64,000 nucleotides of DNA from Macrostomum lignano (Eukaryota). Positions 3,095 through 55,992 of the stretch are shown piece after piece (the first letter of the stretch is position 1; every line of letters begins with the position of its first letter). The position numbers and the translations under genes were made by a program. The DNA is taken from NCBI GenBank assembly GCA_002269645.1, contig NIVC01001462.1, forward strand, positions 1 through 64,000, given 5' to 3'. The notes beneath the pieces are model-generated. The model did not search any database and was not told where the DNA came from. It was given only the letters and a program-made list of their open reading frames with translations.

Positions 3095-3606
3095 ATCGTC
3101 AGTAGTGGCAAACAGTAATAAATACGAGCAATAAAGGGTTTGTACAATCATGAAGACACAGGCGCAGTGGCTTAACATTTTCCGCATTGAAGGTCTCTCG
3201 TTTGAAGGATATTACTGACGTGTAAACACGCCTAATTGAAGGTTGGTATAAAAATGCTACTAAAATTGAATGCGTTTTTTGCGTTGGATGTATATTGTAC
3301 TCGATTTAATGTTAGTGATGGAGGCTTGTTGAATATCCGTTTTCCCTTTGTTGACTATAGTATCCATTCAAATCATGTTACGTATTTTCTATTTGGTAGT
3401 TAATGGATATTGTTAGTTTGTTTAACTTTATAAATTCATTAACGGCTTTTAAAACGTTTTGCAATGACACTGAACTGGCCACATGTATAAAACTGGAGTG
3501 GCCATAATAATTTTACCTAACTCCGCTCCAAGTCATTTTTTGTGTTTTTTAATACAATACGTTTGAATACATAAGCAGAAGAGAGGGGCAATAACATTCT
3601 GCCTTG

Positions 3607-4728: not shown

Positions 4729-5978
4729 GCCTTGCACATGCTACTGAATCATGGAGTCAAATTCCTTTAGTCCAAGTTGCACGGTAAAACAATTTCAATA
4801 GTTTGATTCTGTCGTCTGCATATTCAGAAGTTCATTCAGCACCATCAGCGAATTTGTCCATGGCACTTCCTGAACAAATCTAGCATTGACTCGGCCCTCT
4901 TCTTAGTGTTGTGTGGGATTGTCTTTTCTACTAGTCGGTCCAGCTCCTCCTTAATACACACATGGCGCTGTAGTACCCCATCGCCAGAATGAACCATTGA
5001 TGTTATCAGCGTAAGCAGATCCGAATGGACTTCAAAATCTGCAGTATAATCAGCGGGAAAATTCCCTCGGGAAAATTAGTAATAGATTTTTATATGATAG
5101 ATTTACCAGTAGTTGGATTATAGATTATGGATTTTATTTTTAGTAATTTGGGTATATCCAAAAAGAAAGAGAAAGTTAAGTGTAGCGTAGTGTATTTTAA
5201 TATACAGCCACAAAAATAATCATTTTTAACTTCAAATCAATATACTAAAACTGACGCCTTGTTTGTGTGTATTAGGCTATAAATTCTGGGCACTCGAGAT
5301 AAAAGTGATGGAGATTTTGGTAGACCTCTAGGCACTTACCCTGGTATTCTTAAACAAACTTGACGCAATTCATGACGTTATTAAATTTTGTCAAGGGTGT
5401 AGTCGGTTGGTCTTGATTTTCGAATATTCATCGTTCAAGGTATTAGTAAAATGTAGATAAGAAACTGTCTGCATTAAATAAACTAGTTTTCACGTAAAAA
5501 ATTTCGTGCTTGTAAATGCCAGTAACAATTTTAAAAAATACATAAGATCCTAATAAAATATATGCAATGTAAACACAGTTGATTTTTTCTTTGCCTTTCA
5601 TTACAAAATACTTTAGGTATGGATGCATGGTGTAACTACGGTTGGGTACAAATATGAGGCACTTATTTCTGTCGGAATCAGCATTTTCTTAAAGATTTTG
5701 TTTCCTTCATTAGATTTCAACAAGTAAAATGATAGAAAATAAGATATATTTATTAGTTAATTTCAATAATCCCAGTTTTTTCTAAGTAAACAATTCTACC
5801 TAAGATATTTTCCTTCTGCAGTTTAATTTCATAAAGTAAATTTAATTTAAACAAACTACTTAAACATAGAATTGACTTTCGATCAGCAGCCTTTGCCCAT
5901 CGAATGTAAGCCTCAGCTCAAAATAAAAGCAGTAAGGAAACCGTTTGTTAATCTGCAACATCATTTCAGCTGCCAGTC

Positions 5979-7268
5979 ATGGACCAGCAGCCTCAGCCCA
6001 TTGAAGAAGTTGCTTGTCCGATGTGCTCTCGGCTGTTCTCAGCCGCCAGATTCGCTGAGTATTTGCGTCACTGCAACAGTCACAGCATCGGGCAAGAGTC
6101 TGAGACTGAAAGTGTGCATGAGCAGGTGGTGGATCCTGGTGAGCAGAGAGGTGAGCGGCCAGTTAATGAGCAACTCGCTGAGCCAGAAGCAGATCGGGGT
6201 TCTCAGCAAGTTGGGCATTCGCTGAAGTGCCGGCACTGTGAAAGAGAGTTTACCAACAGCCTGGAGTTGAGACGGCACGTCAGACGTCATCAGCATCGCG
6301 TCATCGACATATCATTGAGGTGCAATACTTGCGGCAAAGGTTTTTCTAGCCGAAGTGAGTTTTTTATTCATCGCCAAGTCAAGAAGCCGTTCAAATGCTG
6401 CGCTTGCGGCAAGTGCTTATGTAGCCGATATAGTCTCCTCAATCATCACCGAGTGCACACAGGTGAAAAACCTTTCAAATGCGACGATTGCGAAAAATGT
6501 TTTGCTGAGCGGGGTGCTTTAATGGCCCATCGCCGTGTGCACACAGGTGAAAAGCCTTATAAATGCAACGATTGCGGCAAATGCTTTGCTCGGCAGAGTA
6601 GCTTATGGACTCATCGCCCTGTCCACACAGGTGAAAAGCGTTATAAATGCGACGATTGCGGCAAATGTTTCTCTCAGCAGATTTCCTTAAGGACTCATCG
6701 TCGTGTCCACACAGGTGAAAAGCCTTTTAAATGCGACGAATGTGACAAATGCTTCGCTCAGCTGAATGTCCTTTTGGCTCATCGCCGTGGCCACACAGGA
6801 GAAAAACCTTATAAATGCGACGTCTGCGGAAAATGCTTTACTGAAAAAAGTGTATTATTGGCTCATCGCCCTGTCCACACAGGTGAAAAGCCTTATAAAT
6901 GCGCCGATTGCGGTAAATGTTTTTCTCATCAGAGTTCCTTAAGGACTCATCGCCGTGTCCACAGAGGTGAAAAGCCTTTTAAATGCGACGACTGCGGCAA
7001 ATGCTTTGCACAAAAGAGTCTATTAAAGGCTCATTTTCGTGTCCACATAGGTGAAAAGCCATTTAAATGCGACGACTGCGGCAAATGTTATGCTCACAAA
7101 AGTACCTTTTTGCGTCATCGTCGTGTCCACACAGGTGAAAAGCCTTTTAAATGCGATGACTGTGGCAGCTGTTTTTCTTGCCCAAGTAACCTTGTGGCTC
7201 ATCGCCGAGTGCACACTGGCGGCAAGCGGTTTAAGTGTGACGATTGTGGCAAAAGTTATTCTCGCTGA
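5979..7268 (+). CDS. C2H2 zinc-finger protein, copy 2 (10 tandem fingers plus one truncated), 429 aa
   Basis: Single ORF with repeated CxxC...HxxxH fingers and TGEKP linkers, and an N-terminal CPMC...HC (UBZ-like) motif. TGA at 7266-7268 replaces the CAA of the other copies in the last finger. Confidence 0.88.
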
Positions 7269-8740
7269 AACCGACTTTTGAAGCATCGCCGAGTGCACAC
7301 CAGTAGCGAGCCAAGTTAGGTCGTCAGTCGTGGCAAAAATTACTAGTCAAAAGAGTGTTTGGACAATTATGAAGTTGCGACGCAGTTGTTTAAAATTTCT
7401 GCTTTGAAAGTCTCGTTTGATGAATATCACCCAATTGTAAATACGCTTAATTAAAATTTGGTATGAAAACTGCTATTAAATTTAAGAGCAGCATTTTTGC
7501 GTTGAATGTGTGTTGTACTCAATTTTCATATTGGCGATGGAGGCTTGCAAAATATAATTTCACTCTTTTTTTGACTGTACAATCTAGTCAAGTCAAGATA
7601 GTATTTTCTATTTGGTAGTTTATTTATATTGGTTATGTTTTTATCTTTGAATTCACTTAATGACATTTAAATGTTTTGCAATTAGATTGGACCAGATAGT
7701 AGAATAACTAAATATGTCACTCGCAAAAAATGCGCTCATCTACTTTTCTTTCAGTAGCAAAATTAGCGTTTTTTGCCTTTACTTTTAGTCCTATCTAGTG
7801 TGTGTGTGTATTTCAAGGAGAGAGGGTTGGGGCCCACGCCGATAAACAAACTCCAGCCTAACTTTATAACCCACTTTTTTTGCTGCTCTCTCATTGGCTG
7901 AGCTAGATTACCCAGACTGAGTTTCGTCTGTCTTGCGTTCAATAGCATGTACGTTGATTCAAATAAAAAACCTCTGGGCCCAAAACCAAGGAAGGGAAAG
8001 GAATTTTAGCTTGCCAAATTAAATTTTACCGAAATTTCACGAACAGCTACTGAAAGAAAGTAGGCACTCTACTTTTTCATGACTTTAAATGCAAGTGACA
8101 TATCTAGTTATTCTACTATCTGTGGATTGGATTAGCCACTTCTGTAGTACTAGACTGGCGATATTTATTTGACCTCAATTCAACTCCAAATCATTTTTCG
8201 TGTTTTTTAATAGATTTACAAACAGTACGCTAGTAGCAGTAGAAGAAAGAGTGGTAATAACATTCTGCACATGTCACTAATCATGGAGTCAAGGTCGTTC
8301 AGTGTAGTTGCAGCGTACCTCTATTAATCCAGTAGCTTGATTCTGTCGTCTGCATATCCAGAAGTTCATTCAGCACCATCAGCGAATTAATGCGTCACTG
8401 GTGATCCACACGTTCTTATCCCACTTCCTGAACACATCCAGCATCCACTCGGCATTCTGTCTAGCGTTGTGTGGGATTGTCTTATCGACTAGTCGGTCCA
8501 GCTTTTCATTACACAACACATGGCCAGAAACGGCCATTGGTGTGTTGTCAGAATAAGCAGATCCGAATTATTTCAAAATTTGCTGTATATTCAGCCAGAT
8601 TGCGAGAAAGAATTAGCGTTTAAATATGTATTTAATTATTTGTTTAACTCCTCAAAAATAAGAATTCACAGTTCAGTGTATTTTATTATACAGCTTTAAA
8701 ATTATCCCTTGAAAGTTAATTTGAACAGTTTGCAAAGTCT

Positions 8741-9498
8741 GGATCAGTCTCGCTTAGTGGCTCATCGCCGAATTTACACGCGCGGCAATCCTTAAGTGCG
8801 ACGATTGCGAAGAATGCTTTTCAGTTCGGCGTCAGCTCTTGACTCCTCATCGCCGAGTCCACAAAGACAGCAAGCCGTTCAAGTGTGACGATTGTGGCAG
8901 AAGATTCTCTCACCTAAACAAAGTGTTGATTCATCGTCGGGTCCACACTGGCGAAAGGCCATTCAAATGCAACGACTGCGGCAAATGCTTTACCCGTAAG
9001 GAGAGCTTATTGACGCATTGCCGTATTCACTCGGGCATCAAGCCATTTAAGTGTGACGACTGCGGCAAATGTTTTTCTAGTTCGATTGAACTCTTGCTTC
9101 GTCGCCGTGTTCACACAGGTGAAAAGCCCTTTAAATGTAACGAATGCGGCAGACGCTTTGATCATCAGTGTGCCTTACGGATTCATCGCCGTGTTCACAC
9201 AGGTGACAAGCCGTTTAAGTGTCAGGTTTGCGGCAGGTGTTTTGCAATCCGAAGTAACCTCTTGAGACATGGTCGAGTGCACAATGGCGACAAGTCGTTC
9301 AAGTGCGACGATTGTGGCAGGTGTTTTTCTTGTCAAAGTAAACTTATGGCTCACCGCCGAGTGCACACTGGAGGCAAACCGTTCAAGTGTAACGATTGTG
9401 GCAAAAGTTTTCCTCGCCAAAACCGACTTTTGAAGCATCATCTAGTCCACGCCAGTAGCAGTTCAAGTCACGTCGGTCGTGGCAAACGGAATTGTTAG
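8741..9498 (+). pseudogene. C2H2 zinc-finger gene, copy 3; 5'-deleted
   Basis: Upstream flank 8597-8742 matches 1420-1563, then jumps directly into degenerate finger sequence. No cognate ATG or N-terminal region. About 7 fingers in ORF 8839-9498, one with H->R. Confidence 0.8.
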
Positions 9499-10995: not shown

Positions 10996-22061
<11,066 letters not shown>

Positions 22062-22494
22062 TTGACAGCTTGCAATAAATTGAAATCAACTGCGTTTCTG
22101 GCGCCAATAATATTCGAAGACAGACAAGATATTAGCGTATTCAGACACCCTTCCTGTTTCTGTTTGCTGTGTCTAAACCTGCGGTACCTGGGGTTATCAG
22201 CTGATAATTCTGCAGTCAAGAATTAATATATCATTAATGACAACTGACCAAACGATATTTAACAAAACTTTCTGAATGGTAGAAGAAAAATCTATGCCAA
22301 TTCAATAACTACCTAGGAATAAAATATATTGGCACTAACCTTGAATTGTTAGGCACACTGCGATTGTTTTCTTCTGTTCTGTTTACCATGCTCAATTAAT
22401 AAAACACGGATACCTACACGGACTGATATTGTGGATTGAAAAAAATTTACTTCATTAGTTAATTTGCTAATCTTGAAAATAATATTCATAATCC

Positions 22495-23150
22495 TCCACC
22501 CCAATCTTCAACACCCACCATCCCAATTTCATCGCCCAGCACCCCAATCTTCAGCACCCACCACCCCAATTTCAACACCCACCACCCCAATTTCAACACC
22601 TACCACCCCAATTTCAACACCCACCACCACAGTTTTCAACACCAACCACCCCAATCTTCAGCACCAGCCACCCCAATTTCAACACCCACCACCCCAATTT
22701 CAACACCCACCACCACAGTTTTCAACACCAACCACCCCAATCTTCAGCACCAACCACCCCAATTTCAACACCCACCACCCCAATTTCAACACCCACCACC
22801 CCAATTTCAACACCAACCACCCCAATTCAACACCAACCACCCCAATTTCAACACCCACCACCACAGTTTTCAACACCAACCACCCCAATCTTCAGCACCA
22901 ACCACCCCAATTTCAACACCCACCACCCCAATTTCAACACCAACCACCCCAATTTCAACACCCACCACCACAATTTTCAACACCAACCACCCCAATCTTC
23001 AACACCCACCACCCCAATTTCATCGCCCAGCACCCCAAAATTCAACACCCACCACCCCAATTTCATCGCCCAGCACCCCAATCTTCAGCACCCACCACCC
23101 CAATTTCAACACCCACCACCCCAATGTCTAGCACCCACCACCACAATCTT
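22495..23150. repeat. 21-bp C/A-rich minisatellite (CCACCCCAATTTCAACACCCA)n between IARS1 and EMC4
   Basis: Seen directly. Confidence 0.92.
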
Positions 23151-23255
23151 TAACACCGCTTCACGCCTGACTTTCCTCGCCAACCCCAAGTGTCTCTGCC
23201 CATTCCCAATCCGGATTCAACACCGTGTGCACACAGCAGTCAAACAAAAATATGC

Positions 23256-24375
23256 ATGTCGTCAAGCCGAACCTCAACTGGCGCAGAGAGCGCCGTTTCC
23301 GTTCTCTCAGCCGGCCATCGGCGCTGGGCGATCCGCAGGCAGGGCTGCCAGTCCTCGTTAGTGGCGGGCGCGTCCTCGTCTTCCCAGCAGCTGTCGCAGC
23401 AGCAGCAGCAGCTTGAAAAGCCGCCTGGCTTTTCTGAGCGCGAGGTGAGTCTTGCAAAGGGTTATTTTAGGTAAACACACATAATGTTAGAAATGGCATA
23501 ATATTTGAGTCGGTTAGAGCGTCGGGACTCACGGCTGAAAAGGTCGGGGGTTCGATTCTTGACCCACTCGGAACTATATGTGTCCTTAAGCAAGACACTT
23601 AACTCTGCGTTGCTTCAGTTCACCTAGCTGTAAAACGGGTTGACAGCATTAGCTGGGGTAATTGAGGGTGCGTGGCGACCCCCCCCCCCAGTCCTTGGAC
23701 TGAACAGCCGTACGCAGCCTTCAAATGCGCCACACAGTAGCTGCGGCTGAGCTGTCGGTTGCACATCTGGCTCAATTGAAGCAGGTGTAATCAGTTATTA
23801 TTATTGTTACTGACGATTAGAAAGTCTGGGTCGCTGTACACTATGTGTGAGCTCGGGAGCTGATAGCCCTGCAATTAGCATTGATATTAATCAAGTTCTC
23901 TTGGTTAGCTGAGACAAATTCCCTCATTTCGTCTTCATCAATCTAATCCCTCAAAACCCTCAACTGCGCGCCGAAGGCTCCAGCCAAGCATCCAGAATCC
24001 ACCGACGGGGCCAGCCTCATCAACAAGCGCGGCTGGGAGGTGGCCCTCGGCCCGGTCCGCCAGTTGCCAATGAATATCTTTATAATGTGGATGGCCGGCA
24101 ACTCGCTGTCGATCTTCCCCATCATGATGGTTGTGATGATGTTTCTGTCGCCGGTTCGAGCTCTGTTCTCCATCAAATCGACGTTCGCAATGATTGAAGG
24201 CGAGCAGGCAGCGCTGCAGAAGCTGGCCTATCTGCTTGGCAATGTGGCCGCTCTGGCGCTGGCTCTGTACAAGTGCAACAGCATGGGCCTGCTGCCCACC
24301 TTCGAGTCCGACTGGCTCTCCTTTGTTGAGGTGCCGAAACGGCAGGAACTGTCTGGCGGAGGAATGCTGCTTTAA
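23256..24375 (+). CDS. EMC4: ER membrane protein complex subunit 4 (TMEM85), 2 exons
   Basis: Exon 1 23256-23444 (HRRWAI...KPPGF, GAG|GTGAGT) and exon 2 23977-24375 ([32 protein letters not shown]...[11 protein letters not shown]...DWLSF...SGGGMLL*) match the EMC4 family. The exon 2 acceptor is AAG, so that boundary is less certain. Confidence 0.92.
23507..23800 (+). mobile_element. tRNA-derived SINE with MIR-like CORE domain (5'-clipped), in the EMC4 intron
   Basis: B-box GGTTCGATTC, then GTGTCCTTAAGCAAGACACTTAACTCTG...CTTCAGTTCACCTAGCTGTAAAA. Second copy at 24875. Confidence 0.8.
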
Positions 24376-25165: not shown

Positions 25166-26160
25166 ATATTCAATCTACGTTGGGTAACTTAAATTTAGTA
25201 GGGACCTAAATAAGATAACTGGGAACTTAAAGTATTTTTAGGAGGGCGGGGACCCTGCGCTGATTTTTTAGAGTTGTTATTATCTGGTTTTTGGCAGCAA
25301 ATTGAAGAATGGATAATTCAAGTATTCAGTAAGTAGTGAATGAAAGTAGCATGTTGGGAAGTTTTGGAGATAAAATAACCTTGTTAATTTTGCGACTTCT
25401 TTATTGGGGATAATGCAGATAAAATGATTTGGATTATGGAGGAAGTGAAAAAAATTGTTCTGAAAGTGATTGTTTAGCGGCGGTAACGTAAAATCGCTCC
25501 CCGCGGTATCTACTGCCGATAGTCTACAACTCGTGCATGTACGATCGAAGGCTTCTTCTAAAAATCTTCGTCGAAAAATGCGCACGTCGTTATAAGATAA
25601 GCCTATGTCCGGCTTGCCAACAAATATTATGCCGTCGAAATTTACAAAGTCTAAAATTCTCATCGGCTGAAGTTTCGGCGCAGCTGATGCTAAAAATGGC
25701 ATGGCCATCTAAATATAAACATGATTCGTGTTCCCTCTTACGTGAGTAATAAAATTGTAACTGCTTTCCATCCCGTACATTCATGCTGGATGACCAGCAG
25801 GGGTGGGGGTAGCCTTTCTCTTCCCTTTTGGGCGAGAAAATTTCCTTCCCGCGGGCCAGCCCTACTGGCCCGCGTATCCACCCCATATATCCCTTCCTTG
25901 CCTACTCCACTGCAACTGTACAGTCCTTGGTACAATACTATAATTTGGTAAGTACAAGTTGATCGTAGGCAAAATAGAACTTTCTGGTGCCCTCATTCAT
26001 ACCCTCCTTTCACCTCAGAGCAATGGGAGCGCACAAGTCTCATTTTCGACAATGAGGCAGTACCTTCAGCTGTCATATAATATATTCGCTCGTAAAGGAG
26101 GCAAACGCTATGATTTTTTCCTCAGCCAACAAGGAACTAAAACTTGAACGCCAAGTATCC

Positions 26161-29100
26161 ATGACTAGCCTGAACTCGTTAGACCAGCTAGAGTGCCACT
26201 TCACCTGGAAGCCAGATGATAACTGCACAAAATCTAACATCGATGACGTGATCGAAAAGACGGAGAACAAGATAAAACGGGAGCCTCACAAAAAGGCCGC
26301 CTACCTGGCAACCCTGGCGTACCTGTGCACTCGCAAGCGAATCAAAAAGTTCGACTTGGCCAAGCAATATCTCACTGAAGCGCTGGAAATTGATGCACAA
26401 ATACAGCATGACAGTCAGGAAGACTTCACGGTATCAAGCGAGTTCGTAATCAGGGCCGACATGCTGCACCTCAAGCAGCTGAGCAAAGGAAAAAGTCGGC
26501 CACTAACACCGGACGAAATCGAGACAGAAATGCAGAGACTGGAAGAGCTCTGGACTGACCCGAGTAGCAAGGCTCGAGCGTTTGCAGCGAAGGGAGTCAC
26601 CTTCGGTTGCTTCGGTCCAATGAAATACGCCATTGGCGTCAGTGCCTTCGCCGAGGCGTCAAGTATCCTATTGGAGCACAGCAAGGGGTGCAACTTCTAC
26701 TGGCTCTATGGTGAAGCTTATTTAAGAGCTCGTTGCGACAGACAGACGGTGAATAAACCCGCTGACGAAGCTCAGTTGGACTTGTGGAGAAGAGCCGAAG
26801 GCATCGGTGAGAAGAAAGGTCTCACGACGGCCACATTCTACGCAAACTATGTTGAAGCCATTCTGCACAACGAGGATTCCAGTCTGTGCCAAAGCTTGGT
26901 TGAAAAGGCTGCCAATCTTCTATTGGAAATGGCTGAGGAAAAGAAAGAGCTGTCGAAAGTCGCGTACCTTATTTGCCTTAAAGTGTTTCGGTGTCTAAAA
27001 TCTAGTTCAAACAATTTAGAAGTCATCAGAAATCGACTGTTTGAAGACGCTAAAGAAGTGGCAAGCGTATTTGTTGATCCTGGATTCTTCCTTGAGCTTT
27101 CCAAAGAAGCTCTAAGCTCCGATAATAGAGATGAGGCGATTCGGTTGCTTAAAGAGGGCAAGGCAAAGGCAGGTGAGCCTGGTCACATCTGGATTGAGTT
27201 GAAACTCATAGAGCTTCAGCGAGAACAATGGAACAAAGACACAGTCGTAGACGCATACGACTCTCTGAGAGAAACTTTCTCAGTCTACAACAAAAATTTC
27301 GCCACAGTAGAGTTTCACAAGGCCATGTTCCTAATGAAGATTGGCGAAACAAAGGAGGCTGTAGAATCGTGCGTTGCTGCCTTTGACACTGAGGAAACAT
27401 TGGACCATATATGGCCCAACGAGAAGGAAACATTTCTTCGACAACTGAATGAGAGGCATGAAGGCTTTGAAGAGTACCTGGCTTGGTACGCCGACAACAT
27501 CGGGACATTCAAAGTTCAGCTGGATGTCTTAGGCCTCTACAGGACGGCTCTGAGGCGAGACGACAAAAACAATTTTGCTCTAGAGCATCTGGGTTGCTAT
27601 TTTATGAAGAATGGCGAATTTTCTGAGGCCTCTGCAAGTTTTCGGAAACTGTCCAGTGATCACAAAAACAAGCAGGCACTGGTGGCCGAGTCGCTACTCA
27701 GAGACCCCGGCTCCGATTTGATGAAGCTGATGGAGTGTCTTGAATGCGGCTGTTGCGATGCTGCTCCTCGAATTCTTGACATCATTGAGCGTAAAAAGTC
27801 CAATCAGCGAACTGCCGTAAGGGTGATGGCGGATGAGTCAAGTCCAACTCAAGCTAGAAGCGACCCGATGTTCTTCCGCCGAGAGTTGTACGAGCTGTGC
27901 GCTAAGATCGAACTGACTCTGGATGATCCCAGCAGCTTCTCTATTAAAACTGAATCGGATTCGGGCCATTTTGAGTCTGTAAAGTTCAGAATCGCCGAGT
28001 TCTTGGAGCTCAATCAGCTAACGAGCAAAGCGAGCTCGACTCGGTCAGCTGAAGGCGCCGGCGATCGCGGAAACCTCATGAGATCGAATCGATTCCGACT
28101 GACGAAGCTGCAGACGAAGGAGACTGGAAGGGAAGTTCAAGAAATGAACAACATGACCGTCTCGGTGCTGAAGGAGGCAAAGGAGGTCCTCGATCGATCT
28201 CTGGCAGTTCGGCTTAAGGGATCGAGTCGAGAGTTCTCATACCCTCACGCGTTTGGCCAGTTGAAGAAGCAGCTAGAAGGCAACTATAAAAAGCAGTTTA
28301 ACCAGCGGAGTTCCGAAGCAGAGCGGAAGGCATTCGAGCTTGATTCACTGATGAGGGTGCTCAAGGAAAACAGAGATGCTGCATCGCTTGAAAACGTGCG
28401 AAAATGTCTGCTAGAAGAACTGAAACACAAACGTATTGATCCGAACTTTCACCAATCGGGAGACACCAGAGACATCTACAACTTCATGGTGAGTCGTGAG
28501 CACAGAATCCTGTCAAGTGAGGACAGCTGGATTGTCCGCTGGATCTATCTGGTTAACAACGAGAAGCACTCGACTGAGATTCTGGTGGAAGAGCTCAATC
28601 AGCAGCTGAAGTCTGATTGGTCGGGAGGCGCAGAGTGCCAAAGGACGGCGTACGACGTGGCGCATCTGGCAGCGGAGTTCGCTGAGGAGACATGGGCCGT
28701 CTTTTCTGATGGAGTCCGAGCTGGTGAGGCTACTGGAGTCCGAGCTGGTGAGGCTACTGGAGCCCGAGCTGGTGAGGCTACTGGAGTCCGAGCTGGTGAG
28801 GCTACTGGAGTTCGAGCTGATGAGGCTGCTGGAGTCCGAGCTGATGAGGCTGCTGGAGCCCGAGCTGGTGAGGCTACTGGAGCCCGAGCTGGTGAGGCTA
28901 CTGGAGTCCGAGCTGATGAGGCTGCTGGAGTCCGAGCTGATGAGGCTGCTGGAGCCCGAGCTGGTGAGGCTACTGGAGTCCGAGCTGATGAGGCTACTGG
29001 AGCCCGAGCTGGTGAGGCTGCTGGAGCCCGAGCTGGTGAGGCTACTGGAGTCCGAGCTGGTGAGGCTACTGGAGTCCGAGCTGATGAGGCTGCTGGAGTC

Positions 29101-29448
29101 CGAGCTGATGAGGCTGCTGGAGTCCGAGCTGATGAGGCTGCTGGAGCCCGAGCTGGTGAGGCTACTGGAGTCCGAGCTGATGAGGCTACTGGAGTCCGAG
29201 CTGATGAGGCTGCTGGAGTCCGAGCTGATGAGGCTGCTGGAGTTGGAGTCCGAGCTGATGAGGCTGCTGGAGTCCGAGCTGATGAGGCTACTGGAGTCCG
29301 AGCTGGTGAGGCTACTGGAGCCCGAGCTGGTGAGGCTACTGGAGTCCGAGCTAATGAGGCTGCTGAAGTCCGAGCTGATGAGGCTGCTGGAGTCCGAGCT
29401 GATGAGGCTACTGGCCTGGTTCATACCAAAAATATAATCGTTAAGTAA
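26161..29448 (+). CDS. IFIT-like tetratricopeptide-repeat protein with C-terminal helical (possibly HEPN-like) domain and GVRA[G/D]EA[T/A] repeat tail, 1095 aa
   Basis: N-terminus SLDQLECHFTW matches the IFIT hallmark (IFIT5 LELECHFTW). YLATLAYL resembles LYNLLAYV, and AAKGVTFGCFGPMKYAIGVSAFAEA resembles CEKGWALLKFGGKYYQKAKAAFEKA. Probable 5'UTR intron 25948-26125. ATG 26161 taken as the start. Confidence 0.82.
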   Translation: MTSLNSLDQLECHFTWKPDDNCTKSNIDDVIEKTENKIKREPHKKAAYLATLAYLCTRKRIKKFDLAKQYLTEALEIDAQIQHDSQEDFTVSSEFVIRADMLHLKQLSKGKSRPLTPDEIETEMQRLEELWTDPSSKARAFAAKGVTFGCFGPMKYAIGVSAFAEASSILLEHSKGCNFYWLYGEAYLRARCDRQTVNKPADEAQLDLWRRAEGIGEKKGLTTATFYANYVEAILHNEDSSLCQSLVEKAANLLLEMAEEKKELSKVAYLICLKVFRCLKSSSNNLEVIRNRLFEDAKEVASVFVDPGFFLELSKEALSSDNRDEAIRLLKEGKAKAGEPGHIWIELKLIELQREQWNKDTVVDAYDSLRETFSVYNKNFATVEFHKAMFLMKIGETKEAVESCVAAFDTEETLDHIWPNEKETFLRQLNERHEGFEEYLAWYADNIGTFKVQLDVLGLYRTALRRDDKNNFALEHLGCYFMKNGEFSEASASFRKLSSDHKNKQALVAESLLRDPGSDLMKLMECLECGCCDAAPRILDIIERKKSNQRTAVRVMADESSPTQARSDPMFFRRELYELCAKIELTLDDPSSFSIKTESDSGHFESVKFRIAEFLELNQLTSKASSTRSAEGAGDRGNLMRSNRFRLTKLQTKETGREVQEMNNMTVSVLKEAKEVLDRSLAVRLKGSSREFSYPHAFGQLKKQLEGNYKKQFNQRSSEAERKAFELDSLMRVLKENRDAASLENVRKCLLEELKHKRIDPNFHQSGDTRDIYNFMVSREHRILSSEDSWIVRWIYLVNNEKHSTEILVEELNQQLKSDWSGGAECQRTAYDVAHLAAEFAEETWAVFSDGVRAGEATGVRAGEATGARAGEATGVRAGEATGVRADEAAGVRADEAAGARAGEATGARAGEATGVRADEAAGVRADEAAGARAGEATGVRADEATGARAGEAAGARAGEATGVRAGEATGVRADEAAGVRADEAAGVRADEAAGARAGEATGVRADEATGVRADEAAGVRADEAAGVGVRADEAAGVRADEATGVRAGEATGARAGEATGVRANEAAEVRADEAAGVRADEATGLVHTKNIIVK
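28709..29413. repeat. 24-bp tandem repeat (GGAGTCCGAGCTGGTGAGGCTACT)n inside the IFIT-like ORF
   Basis: About 29 units encoding an 8-aa repeat. Confidence 0.95.
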
Positions 29449-32044: not shown

Positions 32045-33130
32045 ATGCGAGCGCGGCGAGCACTCAAGGCTATACTTTTCTCAAATGTCAGAGTCAAATT
32101 CATAAGAACTGATACCTCTTACCTCTTCGGAGGTGACTGTAAAAAGCAGTTTAACCAGCTGAGTCCCGAGGCAGAGCGGAAGGCATTCGAGCTTGAGTCA
32201 CTACTGATGAGGCTGCTCAAGGAAAACAAAGATGCTGCATCGCTTGAAAACGTGCGAAAATGCCTGCTAGCTGGAGCCCGAGCTGATGAGGCTACTGGAG
32301 CCCGAGCTGGTGAGGCTACTGAAGTCCGAGCTGGTGAGGCTACTGGAGTCCGAGCTGGTGAGGCTACTGAAGTCCGAGCTGGTGAGGCTGCTGGAGTCCG
32401 AGCTGGTGAGGCTACTGGAGTCCGAGCTGGTGAGGCTGCTGGAGTCCGAGCTGGTGAGGCTGCTGGAGTCCGAGCTGATGAGGCTACTGGAGTCCGAGCT
32501 TGTGAGGCTACTGAAGTCCGAGCTGGTGAGGCTGCTGGAGTCCGAGCTGATGAGGCTAATGGAGTCCGAGCTGGTGAGGCTACTGAAGTCCGAGCTGGTG
32601 AGGCTGCTGGAGTCCGAGCTGGTGAGGCTACTGAAGTCCGAGCTGGTGAGGCTGCTGGAGTCCGAGCTGATGAGGCTAATGGAGTCCGAGCTGGTGAGGC
32701 TACTGAAGTCCGAGCTGGTGCGGCTGCTGGAGTCCGAGCTGGTGAGGCTACTGGAGTCCGAGCTGGTGAGGCTACTGGAGTCCGAGCTGGTGAGGCTACT
32801 GAAGTCCGAGCTGGTGAGGCTGCTGGAGTCCGAGCTGGTGAGGCTGCTGGAGTCCGAGCTGGTGAGGCTGCTGGAGTCCGAGCTGGTGAGGCTGCTGGAG
32901 TCCGAGCTGGTGAGGCTGCTGGAGTCCGAGCTGGTGAGGCTGCTGGAGTCCGAGCTGGTGAGGCTACTGGAGTCCGAGCTGGTGAGGCTGCTGAAGTCCG
33001 AGCTGGTGACGGTGAGGCTGCTGAAGTCCGAGCTGGTGAGGCTGCTGGAGTCCGAGCTGGTGAGGCTACTGGAGTCCGAGCTGGTGAGGCTGCTGAGCCC
33101 GAGCTGGCTCACGGGGAGGGGAATATCTGA
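32045..33130 (+). pseudogene. Partial duplicate of the IFIT-like gene 3' region (short C-terminal segment joined directly to the 24-bp repeat)
   Basis: About 32128-32270 matches 28275-28415 (KKQFNQ...AERKAFEL...KENKDAASLENVRKCLL), then jumps into the repeat (32271-33095). About 300 bp present in copy 1 is missing. Confidence 0.75.
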
Positions 33131-33988: not shown

Positions 33989-35221
33989 ATGGGCAACCAT
34001 GTCGCCATACCGGATCCTGCATATGATACATGTACCCTTCCGGTAAGATCCTAGCTGATTAGTTTCTATGTTTTGTGTACGCTCGTAGAATTTCTTCTGT
34101 TAGGTTTCGTGTCAAAGAATACTTCAAAGTGATTTGTTACTTCTGCTCTTTTCATTGTACAGAGTGTATAAGAGCTACATGCAATAGCCTGCGCAATTGA
34201 GACCTTAACAAGTGACAGTGGCACCTCCAAGAGACAGTGGCACCTCCAAGAGACAGTGGCACCCTCCAAGATACAGTGGCGCCCTTCAAGATACAGTGGC
34301 ACCCTCCAAGAGACAGCGGCACCCTCCAAGATACAGTGGCACCCTCCAAGATACAGTGGCACCCTCCAAGAGACAGTGGCACCCTCCAAGAGACAGTGGC
34401 ACCCTCCAAGATACAGTGGTACCCTCCAAGAGACAGTGGCGGCCTGCAACAAAAGACAATTATCAGCTAAACTGACCCTAATCATGCAGGATGCGCCCGG
34501 TGTCTCTCGGACCTTTCTTCCAAACGATGACGAAGACATGACGAATGAGTACTCAACAGTGCTAAAGAAAGTGGGAAAGCCAATTCGAGATAAAATCCAT
34601 TCGGTGGCGAGAATAGACAATAATGAGCTGGACCGCAGGCTCGCAGCCTCTAAAAATCGAGAGATGCCTGAGACTGACAGCCGGTCAACGCTGCTGAGCT
34701 TCTACACAACAAAACAAAACGCTGAAGCAATCATACAGAACGGCTTCACGGTCGATCAGTATAGCAAGGGCCCGTTCGGTCACGGGATCTACTTTGTATC
34801 CAATGACTACAAGATTAACGAAATAAAGGCCTGCAACAATGGACTCCGCTGCCAGCTGGTGTGTGAGGTGGCTCTGGGCAAGCCGAAGGTCTGCGACATC
34901 CCCAACCGGTCGCTCGACTCTGCCAAGTTGAAAGCCATGGGCTGCGACTCTGTGCTGTCTGGACAAAATAAGAAAAAGCAAAGCGCCAACGCCATCGACA
35001 GAGACGATGAGTACACGTACGTTGTGTACCGTGCTGAGCAGGTGTCGCCCAGGTATTTGGTGACGTTCAGGTCAAGTAGATCCACAGGCGTGATGCTCGA
35101 CAAAGCAGTGCAGTGCGAAGGAGTAGCGACAAGTCTTCCAGGCCTGATTACATTGATTGTGGATCTGGTATTGGACATAATGAGGTCATTCCGTAAGCGT
35201 AAAAAGACTAAACGCAGTTGA
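33989..35221 (+). CDS. PARP-type ADP-ribosyltransferase-like protein, degenerate catalytic site, hydrophobic/basic tail; 2 exons
   Basis: Exon 1 33989-34042 (MGNHVAIPDPAYDTCTLP, CCG|GTAAGA) and exon 2 34490-35221 (CAG|GAT), both phase 0. GPFGHGIYF, LVCEVALGK and YVVYRAEQVSPRYLVTF are PARP catalytic-fold motifs. The HG motif is replaced by FY. Confidence 0.75.
34215..34442. repeat. 20-bp minisatellite (ACCCTCCAAGATACAGTGGC)n in the PARP-like intron
   Basis: About 11 copies. Confidence 0.92.
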
Positions 35222-36600: not shown

Positions 36601-37357
<757 letters not shown>

Positions 37358-37803: not shown

Positions 37804-38514
37804 ATGTACGCGATTACGTTACCGAATCGGCTGTTTCAGTTGGCACTGGTGGCGGGACTGGCGGCCCTCGCCACTGGCGCCTGTGTCGCTCCGTTCATTG
37901 ACAGGCTGGGCAGCTGCGTCTACCTTGGAAACAGCACCTTTAAGTGGTGCGACGCAGCCAGACTGTGCCTGGACATCGGCGGAGAGCTGCTGATGGACCT
38001 GACTGCCATCCGAGCTGTCAATCACTGGATTGATCACTACTATATCGGAGTGACGGATCTCCTGGTTGAGGCGGGCACGTCTCGCAGCAGCTGGAGATTC
38101 GCCAACGGCTCGCTGTTTCCGACTTTGAATGACAGCGACTGGAAAAGTGGGTTGCCGAACAGTTACTCGGTAGACGATGATTTTTTAGCCATCAGCTTTG
38201 ATGGCTTGCGAGACCAAGGCGCCTATCTGGAGAGACAGTTTGTCTGCCAGCCGATCGCGACGCCGAACAGCAAGTACCTGGAGCGAGCGGAGTTCCTGAG
38301 GCTGGGCAACATCAGTCCTGTCTACTGCTACACTGACGCCTCGGTGAGCTCGGAGTTTCGCTGCCTGTGGCTCTGCGTGCAGCGCTGGGAGTGCCGGGCC
38401 GTCCTGTTCAACCGGGCCAGCGGCGCCTGCCGCATGCTGGACTTCGCTGACTCGAGCGTCGGCGACGCCATCGAGACCGACCCGAACTGGGCCAAGTTCG
38501 TCAAGGTGTACTGA
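37804..38514 (+). CDS. Secreted C-type lectin domain + PAN/apple domain protein, 236 aa, intronless
   Basis: Hydrophobic signal peptide. CTLD motifs: CVY...W.DA...C...GGEL, YYIG (WIG), W..G.PN, FVCQ. PAN-like CLWLCVQRWECRAVLFN...CRM. Confidence 0.85.
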   Translation: MYAITLPNRLFQLALVAGLAALATGACVAPFIDRLGSCVYLGNSTFKWCDAARLCLDIGGELLMDLTAIRAVNHWIDHYYIGVTDLLVEAGTSRSSWRFANGSLFPTLNDSDWKSGLPNSYSVDDDFLAISFDGLRDQGAYLERQFVCQPIATPNSKYLERAEFLRLGNISPVYCYTDASVSSEFRCLWLCVQRWECRAVLFNRASGACRMLDFADSSVGDAIETDPNWAKFVKVY

Positions 38515-41828: not shown

Positions 41829-44483
41829 TCACAGAATCGAGCACTCTGACCCAAACTTGATTAGATATCTCGGGGTGGCTTGCTCCGCTCTGTACACGAT
41901 GTACTCGTCATTCAACACTCCTCCTTTTTTCTTCGAATTTCTTCTGGCAAACACGGAATCGTATCCAGCTGTTCTAACCTGCTCTAAGGTAAGACTGGTC
42001 TTTGGAGCATCGCACACCATTGTTTTACCCAGCAAGACATCGCAGAGCAGCAGCGATTTAATACCTGTTCCCCTGCAATACTGAGCGCTCTTGGTGCTAT
42101 CGGTTGCGAAGTATATGCCAGCACCGAACATTCCGCTATTGCCAACCTTGAATCCATTCTGAATGATCATTTCAGCATTTTTTCTTGTAGTTCCGTGGAA
42201 AAGCAACTCCGGCACACAGTCCTTCTTGTGCATTTCGTTGTATACATTGAAAAGTTTCTTATCCAAGACTGGATTTTTTATTTTCTCAATGGAACGAATT
42301 TCCAACTTAATATTGTGCTCCTTTAATGCGTATCGCAGAACTCGGTCGCTTATCTTATAGTACTCGACCGCAGTGTCTTCATTGTCAGCAGTGACTGGTG
42401 TACGTCTGATTCTGTCACCATCCTGACAAAGTTTGTTTGCCTGCACCTGGCTGGCCAGAGGCCAACAGCTGGAACAGAACTGGTCACTTATTCGACGCAA
42501 AGATGATTCGCGGTCGAGCCGTTCGGTGTGCCCGCAGCGAAACGTTCTTAACTCGTCGTTCTAAAAATGAATTGTTGGCAACTGCAAATCCTTTCAAATT
42601 GAGCATGCGCTCGTATCTTTTATTAACAAATCCCTTTGGAAAATGTTTACAGATCACCTTACCCACAGGTGCACAGCCATGTCCTGAAGACTGTTAAACT
42701 CTTCAATCAAGATGCCTAACTGGTCCTTGACATCCGTGCGTAAAACTGAATTTCCTCGATTTTCCTCTATCAGTTTGTAACCCAGTGTGCGGACATTTTC
42801 CACTGTCCACGATCTGCTATCGATCTCTTTGCGTAGCTTTTGAAGGATCCTTTGTCTACGAACCTCCTTATGCTCTGGTGAAGGCTGAGAATCGTCTATC
42901 TGACAGTGTCTTGTCATGTTGTAATGAAGGGCAGATATCCAGCATCGACAGTCGCGAAATTTCTGCCAATACTGCTGCAGAAGTGATTGATCAGGGGTGC
43001 ATAGCTTTGCGGGACCAATTGACGCTGCTTCGGCCAATTGATTGTAACCAGCGCCCTGCAGACAGTTTCGTGAATGCTTGAATGCAAAAACTCTGTCCAG
43101 TTAAAATAATAGCAATAAAAATATATCAGCTGGTCAGCCCCATAAGAGAAGACAGCGAGAGACAAGCGGTCAGAATTCCAACGATAGAGATTAGATAATC
43201 CTGAGATTAAGCTAACCCGCCACCAACAATCCATGAGAACTAGCTAAACAAACCAGCTCTTTCGAAATCGGATTTCCGACTTGAAATGGCACTGGACTTA
43301 CCTGCCAACAAGTGTTTTTGATATTCAATCTCGAATTCGTAGCCAATAAAAGGGACACTGCTGAGACTGGATCGCATTGACATGCAGGAAGCGAGAACTT
43401 TTGTAGGGGAGGGCGCTTTTATGCTGACAAGCCTCTATACACAGCTGAGTGTACATACTATTACATTCTACTGAATTCAAGGAAGTTCAGGAACTATTCG
43501 GAAACCCAGGTAGTCCAAAAGTGTTGAGAGGCTCCGGAAGACCTGGTATGATATTGCCTCTGCTTAGGTCTGCGGGCACCCTCCATACGAGGGCCCACCT
43601 TGCTTCCTAAGATCCCAGCTTTTGTCAGCAGACGTATTTTCGAAGCGTCCGAAAGTGTACCGAAATCATGGGGCCACCCATCCTGCTCGTCAATAGAACC
43701 CACTTTCGCACTGGCAGAAGCTCCCTGCGGCCAAATTCTGGGGTTGAGAATACCAAACTAGAGACCTGTCTTATTATACAGCTAGCATACAGCCTTTCCC
43801 GGTCCGCTGTTACCTATTCTCGTAGTGAGCTACCTCAAGACAAATTTTCCAGCGGTCAGAGACAGACTTCGGAAAGTATGCAGACCGGATCACCATTGCG
43901 GGTAAGTGCTCAACCGTGATATTCGCTAGTAGGATATGAAGACAAACAAGTCATGGTAATGCATTTATGCTATATTAACAAAATTAAAACTACTCACCAT
44001 TTTTTGTTGAACAACCTCGTTCAAGTCGGACATTTTTTGGCCGATGTCACGAATTTGCTTTCTGATTTCCGCGCACAAATCTTTGTTCCCGAAATTTTCT
44101 TCCGCGAGCTTACCTCCCATTGACTGAACTTTAATTACTAGACTTTGCCTTTTTTTAAGCTCGTGCATAAGTTTCATTTGTTGCTCCTGCGTCTCCAGGG
44201 GAATCGACTGGTCCAAAACACCGGACAGGGTCCGCTCAATCCAGCATTGGCTATCATGTAGAAAGTCAAAAAACGAATGCTGGTCCGGTTCCGACTGAAG
44301 CTCTTCAACTAATTTGGCCAGCTTGAAAACTGATTCCAACATATTGTTCCTTCTCCGCCGTGGTTGGCTAGGTCCTTCGCTAAATCGTCTGCGACGCAAC
44401 GATCCACCTCTGTCTCGTTGGAAGTTCGAATGCGGGCTGCTCAATTGCAGCCCTCTGGTGCTATGGAACTCGCACGGTCTACG
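41829..44483 (-). CDS. PARP-type ADP-ribosyltransferase with intact H-Y-E triad and two N-terminal spectrin-like repeats; 3+ exons
   Basis: Exons 44483-43998 (TTTGTAG|CGT ... ATG|GTGAGT), 43055-42663 (CTGCAG|GGC ... TGG|GTAAGG) and 42560-41829 (TTTTTAG|AAC), all phase 0. LFHGT, FGAGIYFA and DEYIVY motifs present. The start is uncertain: ATG 44342 or an upstream exon. Confidence 0.75.
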
Positions 44484-46739: not shown

Positions 46740-47380
46740 AGACGAAAGCCAGTTTGGGTGTTGTCCATGGGGAGGTTCGGTGCTGCCGACTTCCTGTGGA
46801 TGAACGACAGTGCGCTGAAGCTTACATGTATTTGCTTGCTCCTGGCGGCTTGCTCCTGAAGCCTCGCTCCTAGAGGAAGGAAGGCGGTGAACTTCTACGG
46901 TCGTCCAACTTATGGGGACGGCCACCGCTACTTCGGCACTTCGGAGTTTTTGGCCTCGACGATGACCTCCTCGCCTTCCTGTCAACAATTAACTGTTATT
47001 AAGGCGCCCAGCGCCAGATCAATAGGCTGGTCTTGTGGTCAACACACTTAATACCGAGGTTCTCACCGTGTCGGCTGATTTCCCAGAGTACCTGTACGGT
47101 ATACATGTATGCCTCAGCGCAGAAGACCATGCGCTCGCCCGCTGCCAGCGGTTCACCTACCTTGGCGGTCTGGTGCTCCACATAGAGGAGGACATCTGGC
47201 GGCGCATAGGACTCGCCTGGGCGGCCTACTGATCTACCCACCGTCCTTCTCAGTCCCAACCTCTACAGGACGTCCCGCTATTCACCTTGCAGGGTATATT
47301 TAAATGGGGCCAAGCGGGATTCAGTCTATGTGTGGGCAGCCTGCTTTGAGATACCGGGACGCCCGATTCAACGTTCTCGC
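46740..47380 (+). mobile_element. Degenerate RTE-clade LINE fragment
   Basis: DDDLLAFLST...GAQRQINRLV, RCQRFTYLGGLV...RRIGLAWAA and QDVPLFTLQG align with the RTE ORF at 62630-63490. The left boundary is approximate. Confidence 0.75.
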
Positions 47381-47384
47381 CAAC

Positions 47385-49600
47385 GTCATGTCCTGGATTG
47401 CCTTCACTTTGGCTGGGTCCGGCTTGAGCTGATCTCCTTCCAATAAGTAGCCTAGAAACTTGATCGAAGTCTTGCGGAATTCACTTTTTGCCGTGTTGAT
47501 CTTCAATCCTTGCTGGTTTAGTCGATGCAATACTTCCGTCTCACGAACTGCCAATTGTTCTACGCCTTTGCCGCATATCAATATGTCGTCTACGTAGGCA
47601 ATGACGCCAGGAATTCCTTGTAGGACTTGGCTAATGTACCGCTGGAAGATCGCAGGTGCTGTTTTCACTCCGAACGGAAGCTTGTTGAAAGCGAACATCC
47701 CAAATGGTGTTGAAATTACTGTCAGCTCTTTGGAAGCTTCATCTAGTGGGATCTGGTGATAAGCTTTCTCTAGGTCCAGACGAGTGTATATCCGGCTGCC
47801 AGCAGCAGTTGCAATCACTTCGTCAGGTGCAGGCATCGGATATGAATCGTTGATAAGATGAGAATTGATTGTCACCTTGTAGTCGACGCAAAGTCTGAGC
47901 TTTCCAGAAGGTTTCTTGACCACGACAATTGGTGAGGCCCATTCACTGAACTTGACGGGCTTGATGGTGTCTTCTTCAAGCAACCGATCGATTTCATCCT
48001 TGACTCCCTGTCTGAGTGCGAAGGGTAGCGGCCTGGGTTTGCAATGAATTGGAGTGGTTCCTTCCTTGATCTTAAGAGTTACTGGTGGAAATTCGCATGA
48101 CTGGGTTGCCGATGTGCAGCTGTTGTCTACAGCGTTTAGCGTGAAATTGAGCTTGTCTTGGCCAACCAGAACAAAGTTCCTCTGCGATTCCACAATGAAG
48201 AATGTGATTGGAATGAACTCGTCATTGTACTCCAACTCAGTGTCGTGTGTTCCAAAGACCTTCATCTGCGTATCAGCGTATGTTGTCAGAACAGTGTCTG
48301 TAGGTGTCAGCTTTGGACAACCCAATCGTTTCCAGATCGTTTTTGACATTACCGAAACTCCTGCCCCAGTATCGATTTGTGCGTTCACGCTAAGCATCGA
48401 CCCGCTCGTGTGTCTGAGCCTAACAGGCACGGTGTAGCTATCAACGGGATGTCGAATGTGAAAACAATCCTCCTGTTCAGCTTCGCTTGCATCTACAAAG
48501 CTTGTGGTCCTTGGCCACACTGCAGCTCGCCTAAATTGACCAGATGCTGACGGGCTTTTGAACGATTTTCGGCCTTTGCCAAAACCAGTTGATTTCGTTT
48601 TGCAAACTGTTGCGAAGTGGTTTTGCATGCCACATTTGTTGCACGTTTTTCCTTTCGCAGGACACCCTCCATTGGAGCCATGCATTGTGCCACATCTGCC
48701 ACACTTGGAGCTTGTAGAGTGGGAGCCTCTGGCCACCGATGCTGAAATTTTCATTACTTCAGAAGACTGCGGCTGACTGGTGCAACCCTTTAGTATTTGC
48801 GTTTGTGATAGGTTCTGGTGCGCCTCAGCGATGTTGATAGCTGTCTCAAACGTGAGAGTGCTGAAGTCCTGTTCCAATAACTTGCTGATGGCCACCTTGT
48901 CATTCAAACCGAATACGAGCTGATCTCTCAGTCTCTCATCTCTGGATAGGCCAAACTGACGCTTGTCTGCCTGCATGCAGAGTTGCTGTGCATACTCACG
49001 AATGCTCATTGATGCCGTGCGAGTGATATGCTGGAAATTGAATCTCTCAGCCATGACGAACGTCTTTGGTTCCAGGATGCTGGCCAGTAGTTTGGTCAGT
49101 TCATCGAAGCTCTTTTCTCCCGGCTTCTTGGGAGCGGCTCGATCTGCCAATGCGTCGTACAGCTTGGTGCTGAGCTTCATCAGCAGCAGCTTGTTTTTCG
49201 TGTCGTCCTGCCAGCCGTTGAGTTCGCTGCACAGTGTGAATCGGTCCAACCACCTCTGGAAGTTCGAACTTTCATCGAGTTTTTCGATGTCAACTTGCTG
49301 TCCTCTCGATACTTGTGCGCTTGGGTTCTGCGCTGTCGCTGTTGCCGACTTTGTCGCTTGGACTGATTTCGACGAGATAGCAAGCGGTGGTGCTTTGTCG
49401 CTCGAAACCGTTCTACCAACTCCTTTAGTTGGCGATGCTGGCGTACTTCCAGGCAATTTCGTAGCCTATGCTTGCCGACGCCACTGTTGTGCTTTTGGCT
49501 TTAGCCTTTAGCAATTAGCGGTCTGTTGACCTCTGACGCGTCTATCATTTATTTCATAACTCAATAGCATGGTTCAATTCATCAACGCAGTCGCGTAACA
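47385..49600 (-). mobile_element. Ty3/Gypsy (Mag-like) LTR retrotransposon, 3'-truncated: 5' LTR, PBS, gag-protease-RT
   Basis: 116-bp LTR 49600-49485 (TGTT...AACA) and PBS TGGCGTCGGC from 49483. Single ORF with two Cys/His knuckles (CGRC...H...CPAKGKTCNKC...HF..VC), protease IDTGA and RT YVDDILI. No RNase H, integrase or 3' LTR; no ATG at the ORF start. Confidence 0.9.
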
Positions 49601-55402: not shown

Positions 55403-55992
55403 TCTTGTAGGCTTAAAAAGTTTTCTGAAATTTGTGTCTTTCAAAGGCTTGCTGGTCTTTTTAGTGCATTAATGCGCTTTCTGAGGTGTAGCTCAGGTGT
55501 TGAGGTTGCTCGTTTCTTTGCGATGCGACTACTCATATTTTATAGAGTGATAGAGAGTACTCAGCTACAGTATCTGTCTTGCCGTTGCACAAATTTACTT
55601 TGCTGACCATTGGGCTGTGTGTCCAAACAGCTAAATGTACAATATGAAAAATGGGCAGAAAATAAGAGCTGCGCTCGTGTGAAGTTAACTATATTTAGCA
55701 ACATAGAAAATTTGTGAAGGTATCACGGTATCAAAATATAGGGTCCACACGAATTTTCCAACGCTAATTGTCTTACTAGCTATGGTTAATCCAAAAAGTC
55801 TTAAAAATCCAGCAACCTTAGTCAAGAAGTGCAGTTTCAAGCACCGACCTACGGCGCTGTTCATTTGTTTCTTCGCATAGAAGCTGATCCAGATTATGCC
55901 AAGTTTCAGATTTAGTGGGCAAGTTGTTTCCTGGTTTTGCTGGTTGACGCTATAGTTGCTAATTAACTACTAACTAGCTGGAATCCTTTTTG

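Follow-up and report, generated by a model that had tools for sequence, protein, structure and literature searches.

A long-form relative of vertebrate IFIT proteins encoded by the flatworm Macrostomum lignano

Do IFIT proteins have relatives outside the vertebrates? This question is raised by a gene of the flatworm Macrostomum lignano located in the window analyzed here, by which we mean the whole stretch of 64,000 nucleotides at positions 1 to 64,000 of contig NIVC01001462.1 (assembly GCA_002269645.1, forward strand). In the literature searched, IFITs are held to be absent from invertebrates and to have emerged together with interferon in the jawed vertebrates (PMC3688568); no lower animal is reported to have them (PMC11462223). 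Our literature search found no paper on protostome, flatworm, or other invertebrate IFIT relatives. Such relatives are latent in databases, since the NCBI pipeline labels hemichordate proteins ‘IFIT1-like’. An earlier sequence-only reading of the window proposed that positions 26161–27800 encode an IFIT-like antiviral tetratricopeptide repeat (TPR) protein of an invertebrate, carrying the N-terminal IFIT signature and embedded among PARP-like genes.

We propose that the product of this gene belongs, as a long form, to an invertebrate family of common descent with vertebrate IFITs and that it has a putative role in RNA surveillance; we put the probability of this reading, taken as a whole, at roughly 0.6. 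Distant homology to vertebrate IFITs is strongly supported by profile searches, profile-profile alignment, and the predicted fold. A role of the flatworm protein in RNA surveillance is plausible.

Homology of the repeat region to IFITs

The repeats of the window protein are degenerate, like those of IFITs, and canonical 34-residue TPR motifs do not rise above Pfam thresholds. The Pfam scan returned single repeats, all of them sub-threshold: TPR_8 at 22.2 bits (cut-off 25.7), TPR_1 at 19.8 (27.8), and TPR_2 at 20.0 (27). A single-sequence search against the PDB gave weak generic TPR matches and no IFIT, and a three-sequence N-terminal profile (A3), which was too shallow, reached IFIT1 at just E=0.56. 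A profile of three flatworm paralogs alone (A2) was scored exhaustively against 1.84 billion representative proteins and gave 70 matches. These included a stingray ‘IFIT5-like’ protein (E=4.8e-7, profile positions 5–179), a protein of the acorn worm Saccoglossus named by NCBI ‘antiviral innate immune response effector IFIT1-like’ (E=1.1e-5), and a protein of the centipede Strigamia (E=1.8e-10). The motif LECHF[TNK]W is present in many of the A2 matches, and intermediate invertebrate sequences form a continuum.

An alignment of 21 N-terminal modules, all from invertebrates (A5), matched human IFIT5 in the PDB with E=1.1e-24 in a single stretch (profile positions 4–285 on chain residues 10–278). 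Human IFIT1 (about 1e-19), IFIT2 (4e-15), and IFIT3 (9.5e-9) were matched collinearly, while the match to other natural TPR proteins in the PDB was limited to one repeat (positions 138–173). A word-indexed comparison of A5 with 5.8 billion proteins, restricted like one of A7 by candidate limits, gave few matches; those listed included an elephant-shark IFIT1B-like protein (4.6e-19), a Pogona IFIT5-like protein (6.6e-18), and ostracod proteins. A control profile of 12 flatworm-type long forms, from which all short IFIT-like sequences had been taken out (A6), still ranked IFIT5 first in the PDB (E=6.7e-7). In hhalign, the repeat regions of seven long forms aligned to three vertebrate IFITs with a probability of 96.8% (E=2.3e-10, 272 columns), over a span that begins at the CHFTW loop and reaches the IFIT pivot. 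A2, A5, A6, hhalign, and the fold search agree, and the relationship of this protostome protein to IFITs is one of homology and not mere resemblance.

The LECHFTW signature described in the sequence-only reading was found at the N-terminus. Its CHFTW core is found a single time when the whole window is translated in six frames; the residue frequencies of the window predict 6e-3 chance occurrences overall and 1.5e-6 among the first 30 residues of a given protein. CHFTW is invariant among the M. lignano paralogs and aligns to C18–W22 of IFIT5, in the loop that joins N-terminal helices one and two. According to a study of fish IFITs, this pentapeptide (residues 19–23, loop L1) is invariant throughout the IFITs and packs on helix alpha7 (PMC11462223). 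When the stingray IFIT segment LDQLQCHFTWGP is set against LDQLECHFTWKP of the window protein, the likeness extends past the pentapeptide (LDQLxCHFTWxP). The helices that follow are collinear with IFIT5 and IFIT1 in both the HMMER and the hhalign alignments, as that reading had also suggested.

The protein was modeled by AlphaFold2 (AF2) from a multiple sequence alignment of 49 family members that included no vertebrate IFIT. The model has a mean predicted local distance difference test score (pLDDT) of 90.4 and a predicted template modeling score of 0.78, with the repeat region mostly above 90; a model from a three-sequence alignment (pLDDT 55) was not used. The best Foldseek match in the PDB is IFIT5 in complex with 5'-triphosphate (5'-ppp) oligo-C (4hor_A; E=6.4e-7, 550 columns), with a template modeling score normalized to the target, TM(target), of 0.60. 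Every IFIT1 and IFIT5 entry scored 0.53–0.62, far above other long TPR proteins: Ctr9, Ski3, OGT, IFT-A, and NatA reached 0.36 or less, and BBS4 reached 0.50 only at a root-mean-square deviation of 15 Å. Judged from the model, these scores suggest that the repeat region resembles a whole IFIT, beyond its N-terminus. A Foldseek search of a viral library returned only generic giant-virus TPR/Sel1 proteins.

The placement of the protein within this group was examined by a rough neighbor-joining clustering over 262 profile columns, without outgroup or support values. Vertebrate IFITs clustered with hemichordate and arthropod short forms, and the window protein clustered with long forms of M. lignano and of an assembly in ENA in a sister clade. 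It thus falls outside, and is not nested within, the vertebrate IFITs. Because of this separate clustering, we file the protein as an IFIT-superfamily homolog with a new architecture and not as an IFIT ortholog.

Architecture of the long form and its family

The interval delimited in the sequence-only reading covers the TPR half only. The open reading frame (ORF) that contains the gene runs in one piece from 26110 to 29448 on the forward strand, and beyond the repeats it encodes a further conserved domain (275 amino acids) and a repeat tail (246 amino acids). The 1095-residue product is therefore not a TPR-only protein, and the view of it as an orthodox IFIT had to be given up. The second in-frame ATG, at 26161, coincides with the N-terminal methionine of the three closest homologs, and it was taken as the start codon because these homologs begin exactly there; they do not match at the first ATG (26110), which lies in frame 17 codons upstream. 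A polypyrimidine tract followed by AG, ttttttcctcag, is a possible splice acceptor, cis or trans, to judge by its sequence. Its use would leave any upstream exon without coding sequence, in contrast to vertebrate IFITs, in which exon 1 gives the first codons. The sequence-only reading had nearly all of the coding sequence in one exon behind a short upstream exon, as in vertebrate IFITs; here all of the coding sequence is in one ORF, and the only sign of an upstream exon is the acceptor-like ttttttcctcag. The model of paralog P0001 has a single exon, and the gene span of P0002 exceeds its coding sequence by about 190 nt, equal to one small intron.

In the AF2 model, a short low-confidence linker connects the IFIT-like region to an all-helical C-terminal domain (pLDDT about 70–95), whose conservation among paralogs equals that of the IFIT-like region. 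A DUF1722 match to this domain (E=6.5e-4, below cut-off) was rejected as spurious; among the five members scanned it appeared only in the window protein, besides a faint precomputed match in P0001, a close paralog. A long form of this kind, with an added C-terminal domain, appears undescribed.

The domain ends in a terminal module of about 83 amino acids, in the alignment of which (A7) W, W, E, and E are invariant and R, E, N, H, and H near-invariant. The module has no match among PDB sequences, Pfam, or PADLOC, and an HEPN-type Rx4-6H motif, searched for by eye, was not found in it. It is located behind the IFIT-like region in the gene described here, in its close paralogs, and in P0028 of M. 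lignano. It also stands behind an N-terminal RRM in two-part proteins (P0017, Pfam RRM_1 E=5.5e-9), beside repeats of Cys and His, named C3H1-type zinc fingers in UniProt (P0061/P0087), and together with RGG-type repeats (P0041). By these occurrences it is a separable unit, and the predicted gene-model fusions suggest a mobile effector domain of RNA-binding proteins. All its fusion partners are RNA-binding modules, and this is our main, though indirect, ground for supposing that the IFIT-like part may bind RNA as well and that the terminal module may be a shared output. Behind the module follows the 246-residue tail, of low complexity, acidic and Ala-rich, with the repeat GVRA[GD]EA[AT], encoded by the 24-nt unit of a tandem repeat; similar variable tails are found in P0001, P0002, and P0041.

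At least ten diverged paralogs are present in M. lignano. PAA75149.1 (Mlig006963g3), Mlig031348g1, and Mlig030191g2 are 81%, 64%, and 56% identical to the window protein and share its architecture of IFIT-like region and C-terminal domain, with or without the tail. The long forms of ENA assembly ERZ25074608 (26–33% identity) have the same full architecture, with tail repeats that vary in sequence and length. All of these proteins are annotated as hypothetical proteins only. Contigs ctg185430 and ctg182062 of that assembly (L004, L005) contain tandem clusters of long-form genes together with isolated terminal modules, with retroelements interspersed; these genes and modules are probably split by introns under prokaryote-style gene calling. 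In the window itself, a truncated duplicate lies downstream of the gene. About 46 of its amino acids (nt 32132–32269) are homologous to residues 707–751 with 83% identity and are followed by the same 24-nt repeat; the TPR region and the terminal module are lacking, and the ORF is probably chimeric or the remnant of a pseudogene. The identity to PAA75149.1, and a retroelement in the window that matches a copy on contig NIVC01000347.1 of M. lignano with 98.7% identity across 2.26 kb, confirm that the genome is that of an invertebrate.

Putative RNA pocket, neighboring genes, and possible functions

According to the reading we favor, amino acids 1–557 would form an IFIT-type helical-repeat clamp that opens with the CHFTW loop, as the model indicates. 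This clamp may bind a ligand in the cytosol, most probably single-stranded RNA or the ends of RNA, with a specificity differing from that of the 5'-ppp pocket of IFIT5 because the pocket is kept only in part. The terminal module would be the output part, acting as an effector or recruiting partners, and would be joined to varied RNA-binding front ends, i.e., IFIT-like TPR, RRM, CCCH zinc fingers, and RGG. An expanded, tandemly duplicating family in the flatworm is what would be expected of fast-evolving surveillance or immune genes.

How much of the pocket is kept can be read against mutational work on IFIT5, where mutations of T37, Q41, K150, R186, Y250, R253, Y254, R260, Q288, and F337 have a high effect on ppp-RNA binding (PMC9677429). 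Mutation of E33 has a low effect and that of Y156 is neutral (PMC9677429, Table 5), and the strongest electrostatic contributors are K150, R253, and R186 (PMC9677429). The window protein, a human IFIT5 fragment, and three vertebrate IFITs were aligned to the A5 profile with HMMER. Apart from CHFTW, the window protein keeps K144 and Y156 at the same positions, and R186 corresponds to R191, which is invariant in the flatworm trio and conserved family-wide. The acidic character of E33 is kept in D29, and T37 is replaced by K33, basic like the Arg of other IFITs. K257 is kept as K274 in the A5 alignment or as K315 in hhalign, R260 is kept as R277 in the former or becomes L318 in the latter, and Y250 corresponds to F309 in hhalign; the assignments of R260 and Y250 depend on the alignment register.

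Several results weigh against the proposed RNA-binding role. Q41 is changed to K37, K150 is replaced by C150 in both alignments, and R253 corresponds to L270 (HMMER) or E312 (hhalign), being unconserved in both; K150 and R253 make the two strongest contacts to the triphosphate. Y254 is replaced by I271 (I or L, depending on the alignment), and H287, Q288, and R294 correspond to W344, I345, and E351 (hhalign). IFIT helices 250–300 are set one hairpin later by hhalign than by HMMER, and because the two registers differ, the mapping is uncertain past about residue 250 and some pocket positions lack a firm counterpart. For the TPR region the net charge is -15, whereas the Pogona IFIT5-like protein has +7. 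As CHFTW is regarded as a motif of structural packing (PMC11462223), its conservation supports the fold and not a function. As for the output side, the C-terminal domain has no match above threshold in Pfam, PDB sequences, or PADLOC, and the domain-association argument is drawn from gene models of one species. The search for an IFIT-type pocket thus had a divided outcome, with equivalents of R186, Y156, and K144 on one side and the loss of K150 and R253 and the acidic charge on the other; the sequence speaks for conservation of the fold and of a portion of the putative channel, whereas the triphosphate-binding constellation of IFIT5 is not retained.

A further point on this side comes from the neighborhood. 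Three ORFs with PARP catalytic domains do lie near the gene, as the sequence-only reading stated; they are small, with mutual identities of 35–38%. Among solved structures, the catalytic domain of tankyrase is nearest to them, and the PARP-like domain of ZAP matches more weakly. In the middle ORF, NDEYIVY aligns to AEYVIY of tankyrase-2, and this segment would carry what we take to be the catalytic Glu of the H-Y-E triad. However, no PARP-like sequence was found within 10 kb of P0001, P0002, or the ostracod homolog, and the 10 kb flanking each side of the family clusters in ERZ25074608 likewise gave no PARP call. PARP genes are therefore real neighbors here but not conserved partners, and an older antiviral module of IFIT-like and PARP genes is not supported, linkage being absent at the three other loci.

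The alternative that survives best, though it is clearly the less probable one, is a protein that uses the IFIT fold as a scaffold and has no RNA or immune role. It would be a TPR interaction platform, as IFIT3 largely is, with a C-terminal domain serving assembly in a housekeeping or reproductive process of the flatworm. The missing K150 and R253 contacts, the acidic repeat region, the structural nature of CHFTW, and the unconserved linkage to immune-type genes all fit this alternative, as does the general use of TPR folds as interaction modules. K150 is moreover not universal even among vertebrate IFITs, being N in shark and S in stingray. The conserved R186, Y156, and K144 argue against a mere scaffold, as does the repeated joining of the terminal module to bona fide RNA-binding domains; paralog expansion with tandem duplication is also more typical of surveillance than of housekeeping families.

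We consider it unlikely that the protein is an orthodox sensor of 5'-ppp or cap-0 RNA of the IFIT1/IFIT5 type, which would sequester viral RNA in the same pocket. Its best structural match is indeed IFIT5 in a ppp-RNA complex, and CHFTW, R186, Y156, and K144 are conserved, with residue 37 basic as in IFIT1-type proteins. The substitutions at K150, R253, and Q41, the unconserved Y254, H287, Q288, and R294, and the charge of the TPR region speak against such a sensor, and so do the extra 275-residue domain and tail, found in no IFIT, and the clustering apart from the group of vertebrate, hemichordate, and arthropod short forms. Chance or convergence, by which a generic TPR protein would carry a fortuitous CHFTW, could appeal to the ready cross-matching of TPR proteins and to the single-sequence and A3 searches, but it is effectively refuted by the low expectation of CHFTW at that position, the collinear single-stretch matches over about 280 residues to E=1e-24 together with the hhalign result, the first rank of IFIT5 in the fold search with TM scores far above other TPR proteins, and the continuum of intermediate invertebrate sequences.

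Returning to the RNA-surveillance reading, a wider and decidedly tentative extension of it would be that IFIT-type RNA-end sensors are ancestral to bilaterians and no innovation of jawed vertebrates. Flatworms and certain other invertebrates would have derived from them a modular family of surveillance proteins in which an undescribed terminal effector is carried on interchangeable RNA-binding front ends. If this were true, it would imply a system of antiviral defense or RNA quality control that works without interferon and acts through a new output mechanism.

The positions of the features discussed, along with other observations on the window, are collected in Table 1.

Table 1. Features of the 64,000-nt window, with positions in the window and the basis of each assignment
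Feature	Position	Strand	Basis or remark
IFIT-like long-form coding sequence	26161–29448	+	1095 aa + stop; ORF list, paralog N-termini P0001, P0002, P0079
Polypyrimidine tract + AG, ttttttcctcag	26113–26124	+	36 nt 5' of start codon; read directly from sequence
CHFTW pentapeptide, aa 12–16, inside LDQLECHFTWKP	26194–26208	+	IFIT loop-L1 signature
IFIT-like TPR/helical-repeat region, aa 1–557, about 29 helices	26161–27831	+	AF2, Foldseek, HMMER, hhalign
All-helical C-terminal domain, aa 574–849, ~275 aa	27880–28707	+	Conserved in paralogs and ENA long forms
Terminal module, about 83 aa, aa 767–849	28459–28707	+	Signature REHxI..W...W....N..KH...YDVAHxAAEFAE
24-nt tandem repeat, 29 copies, in frame	28710–29414	+	Tandem Repeats Finder, 91% matches
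Truncated partial duplicate	32045–33130	+	2.6 kb downstream of gene; ORF translation, tblastn
PARP catalytic-domain ORF	34256–35221	+	Pfam PF00644 E=3e-10
PARP catalytic-domain ORF	41829–42500	-	Pfam PF00644 E=5e-27
PARP catalytic-domain ORF	54401–55444	-	Pfam PF00644 E=2e-9; hydrophobic C-terminal extension
ORF between PARP genes	37804–38514	+	Weak PAN-domain match E=1.1e-4, just above Pfam cut-off; probable signal-peptide-like N-terminus by eye, possibly secreted or lectin-like
EMC4 exon (ER membrane protein complex subunit 4)	24040–24375	+	Pfam E=1.5e-38; adjoins IFIT-like gene upstream
Three C2H2 zinc-finger ORFs	2183–9498	+	Array with near-identical linker + finger repeats; KRAB-less poly-zinc-finger type
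Isoleucyl-tRNA synthetase exons in appearance	12963–14294, 16048–16737	+	By eye; between them lie long CT/GT-rich tandem arrays, which give SVCLSVCL... ORFs on both strands
Low-complexity tandem arrays	11544–13016, 19608–22061, 22464–23153, 36615–37343		Very long; spurious ORFs of 200–760 aa in several frames
Extreme GC skew	20–22 kb		-0.84
Retroelement ORF	47321–49456	-	Gag-like, aspartyl-protease, and reverse-transcriptase domains; the element with a copy on NIVC01000347.1
Reverse-transcriptase fragment	62630–63490	-	

Comparison with known systems

The parallel with ZAP (ZC3HAV1) is one of analogy only. Both proteins combine a nucleic-acid-binding front end, putative in the flatworm, with a separate C-terminal domain, the terminal module also occurs with CCCH zinc fingers in M. 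lignano, and PARP-like genes are near in the window. The flatworm terminal module is, however, not a PARP or WWE domain, and the likeness drawn here is one of layout, not of sequence or fold.

Much closer are the short IFIT-like proteins of invertebrates, such as those of Saccoglossus kowalevskii (XP_006812281.1), Glandiceps talaboti (XP_077977251.1), Strigamia maritima (T1JLK3), and Darwinula stevensoni (CAG0903353.1). They share the N-terminal module of the long form, in which the loop reads C/S-H-F-x-W, and the flatworm profile detects them with E values of 1e-5 to 1e-10. In contrast to the long form, they measure about 400–560 amino acids, are TPR-only or tandem-TPR proteins, and have no C-terminal domain; in the rough clustering they are nearer to vertebrate IFITs than the flatworm long forms are.

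With vertebrate IFITs themselves, the flatworm protein shares the L..L.CHFTW loop, helical repeats that are collinear over the whole IFIT length, the best fold match, and equivalents of K144, Y156, and R186. It differs in that its repeat region is about 75 residues longer and net acidic, identity is about 15%, K150 and R253 are lost, and the protein belongs to a separate clade. Vertebrate IFITs are TPR-only proteins of about 450–500 amino acids, whereas the flatworm protein has 1095 and bears the C-terminal domain and tail; in addition, and unlike the hosts of vertebrate IFITs, the flatworm has no interferon. The partial loss of ppp-binding residues advises caution against carrying vertebrate function over by name. 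The pairing of the terminal domain with RNA-binding modules makes it a candidate new effector in invertebrate RNA surveillance. The occurrence of the family in a flatworm, an ostracod, a centipede, hemichordates, and further eukaryotes shows that the IFIT fold and its signature loop long predate vertebrates, so that the origin of the sensor scaffold can be separated from the origin of interferon.

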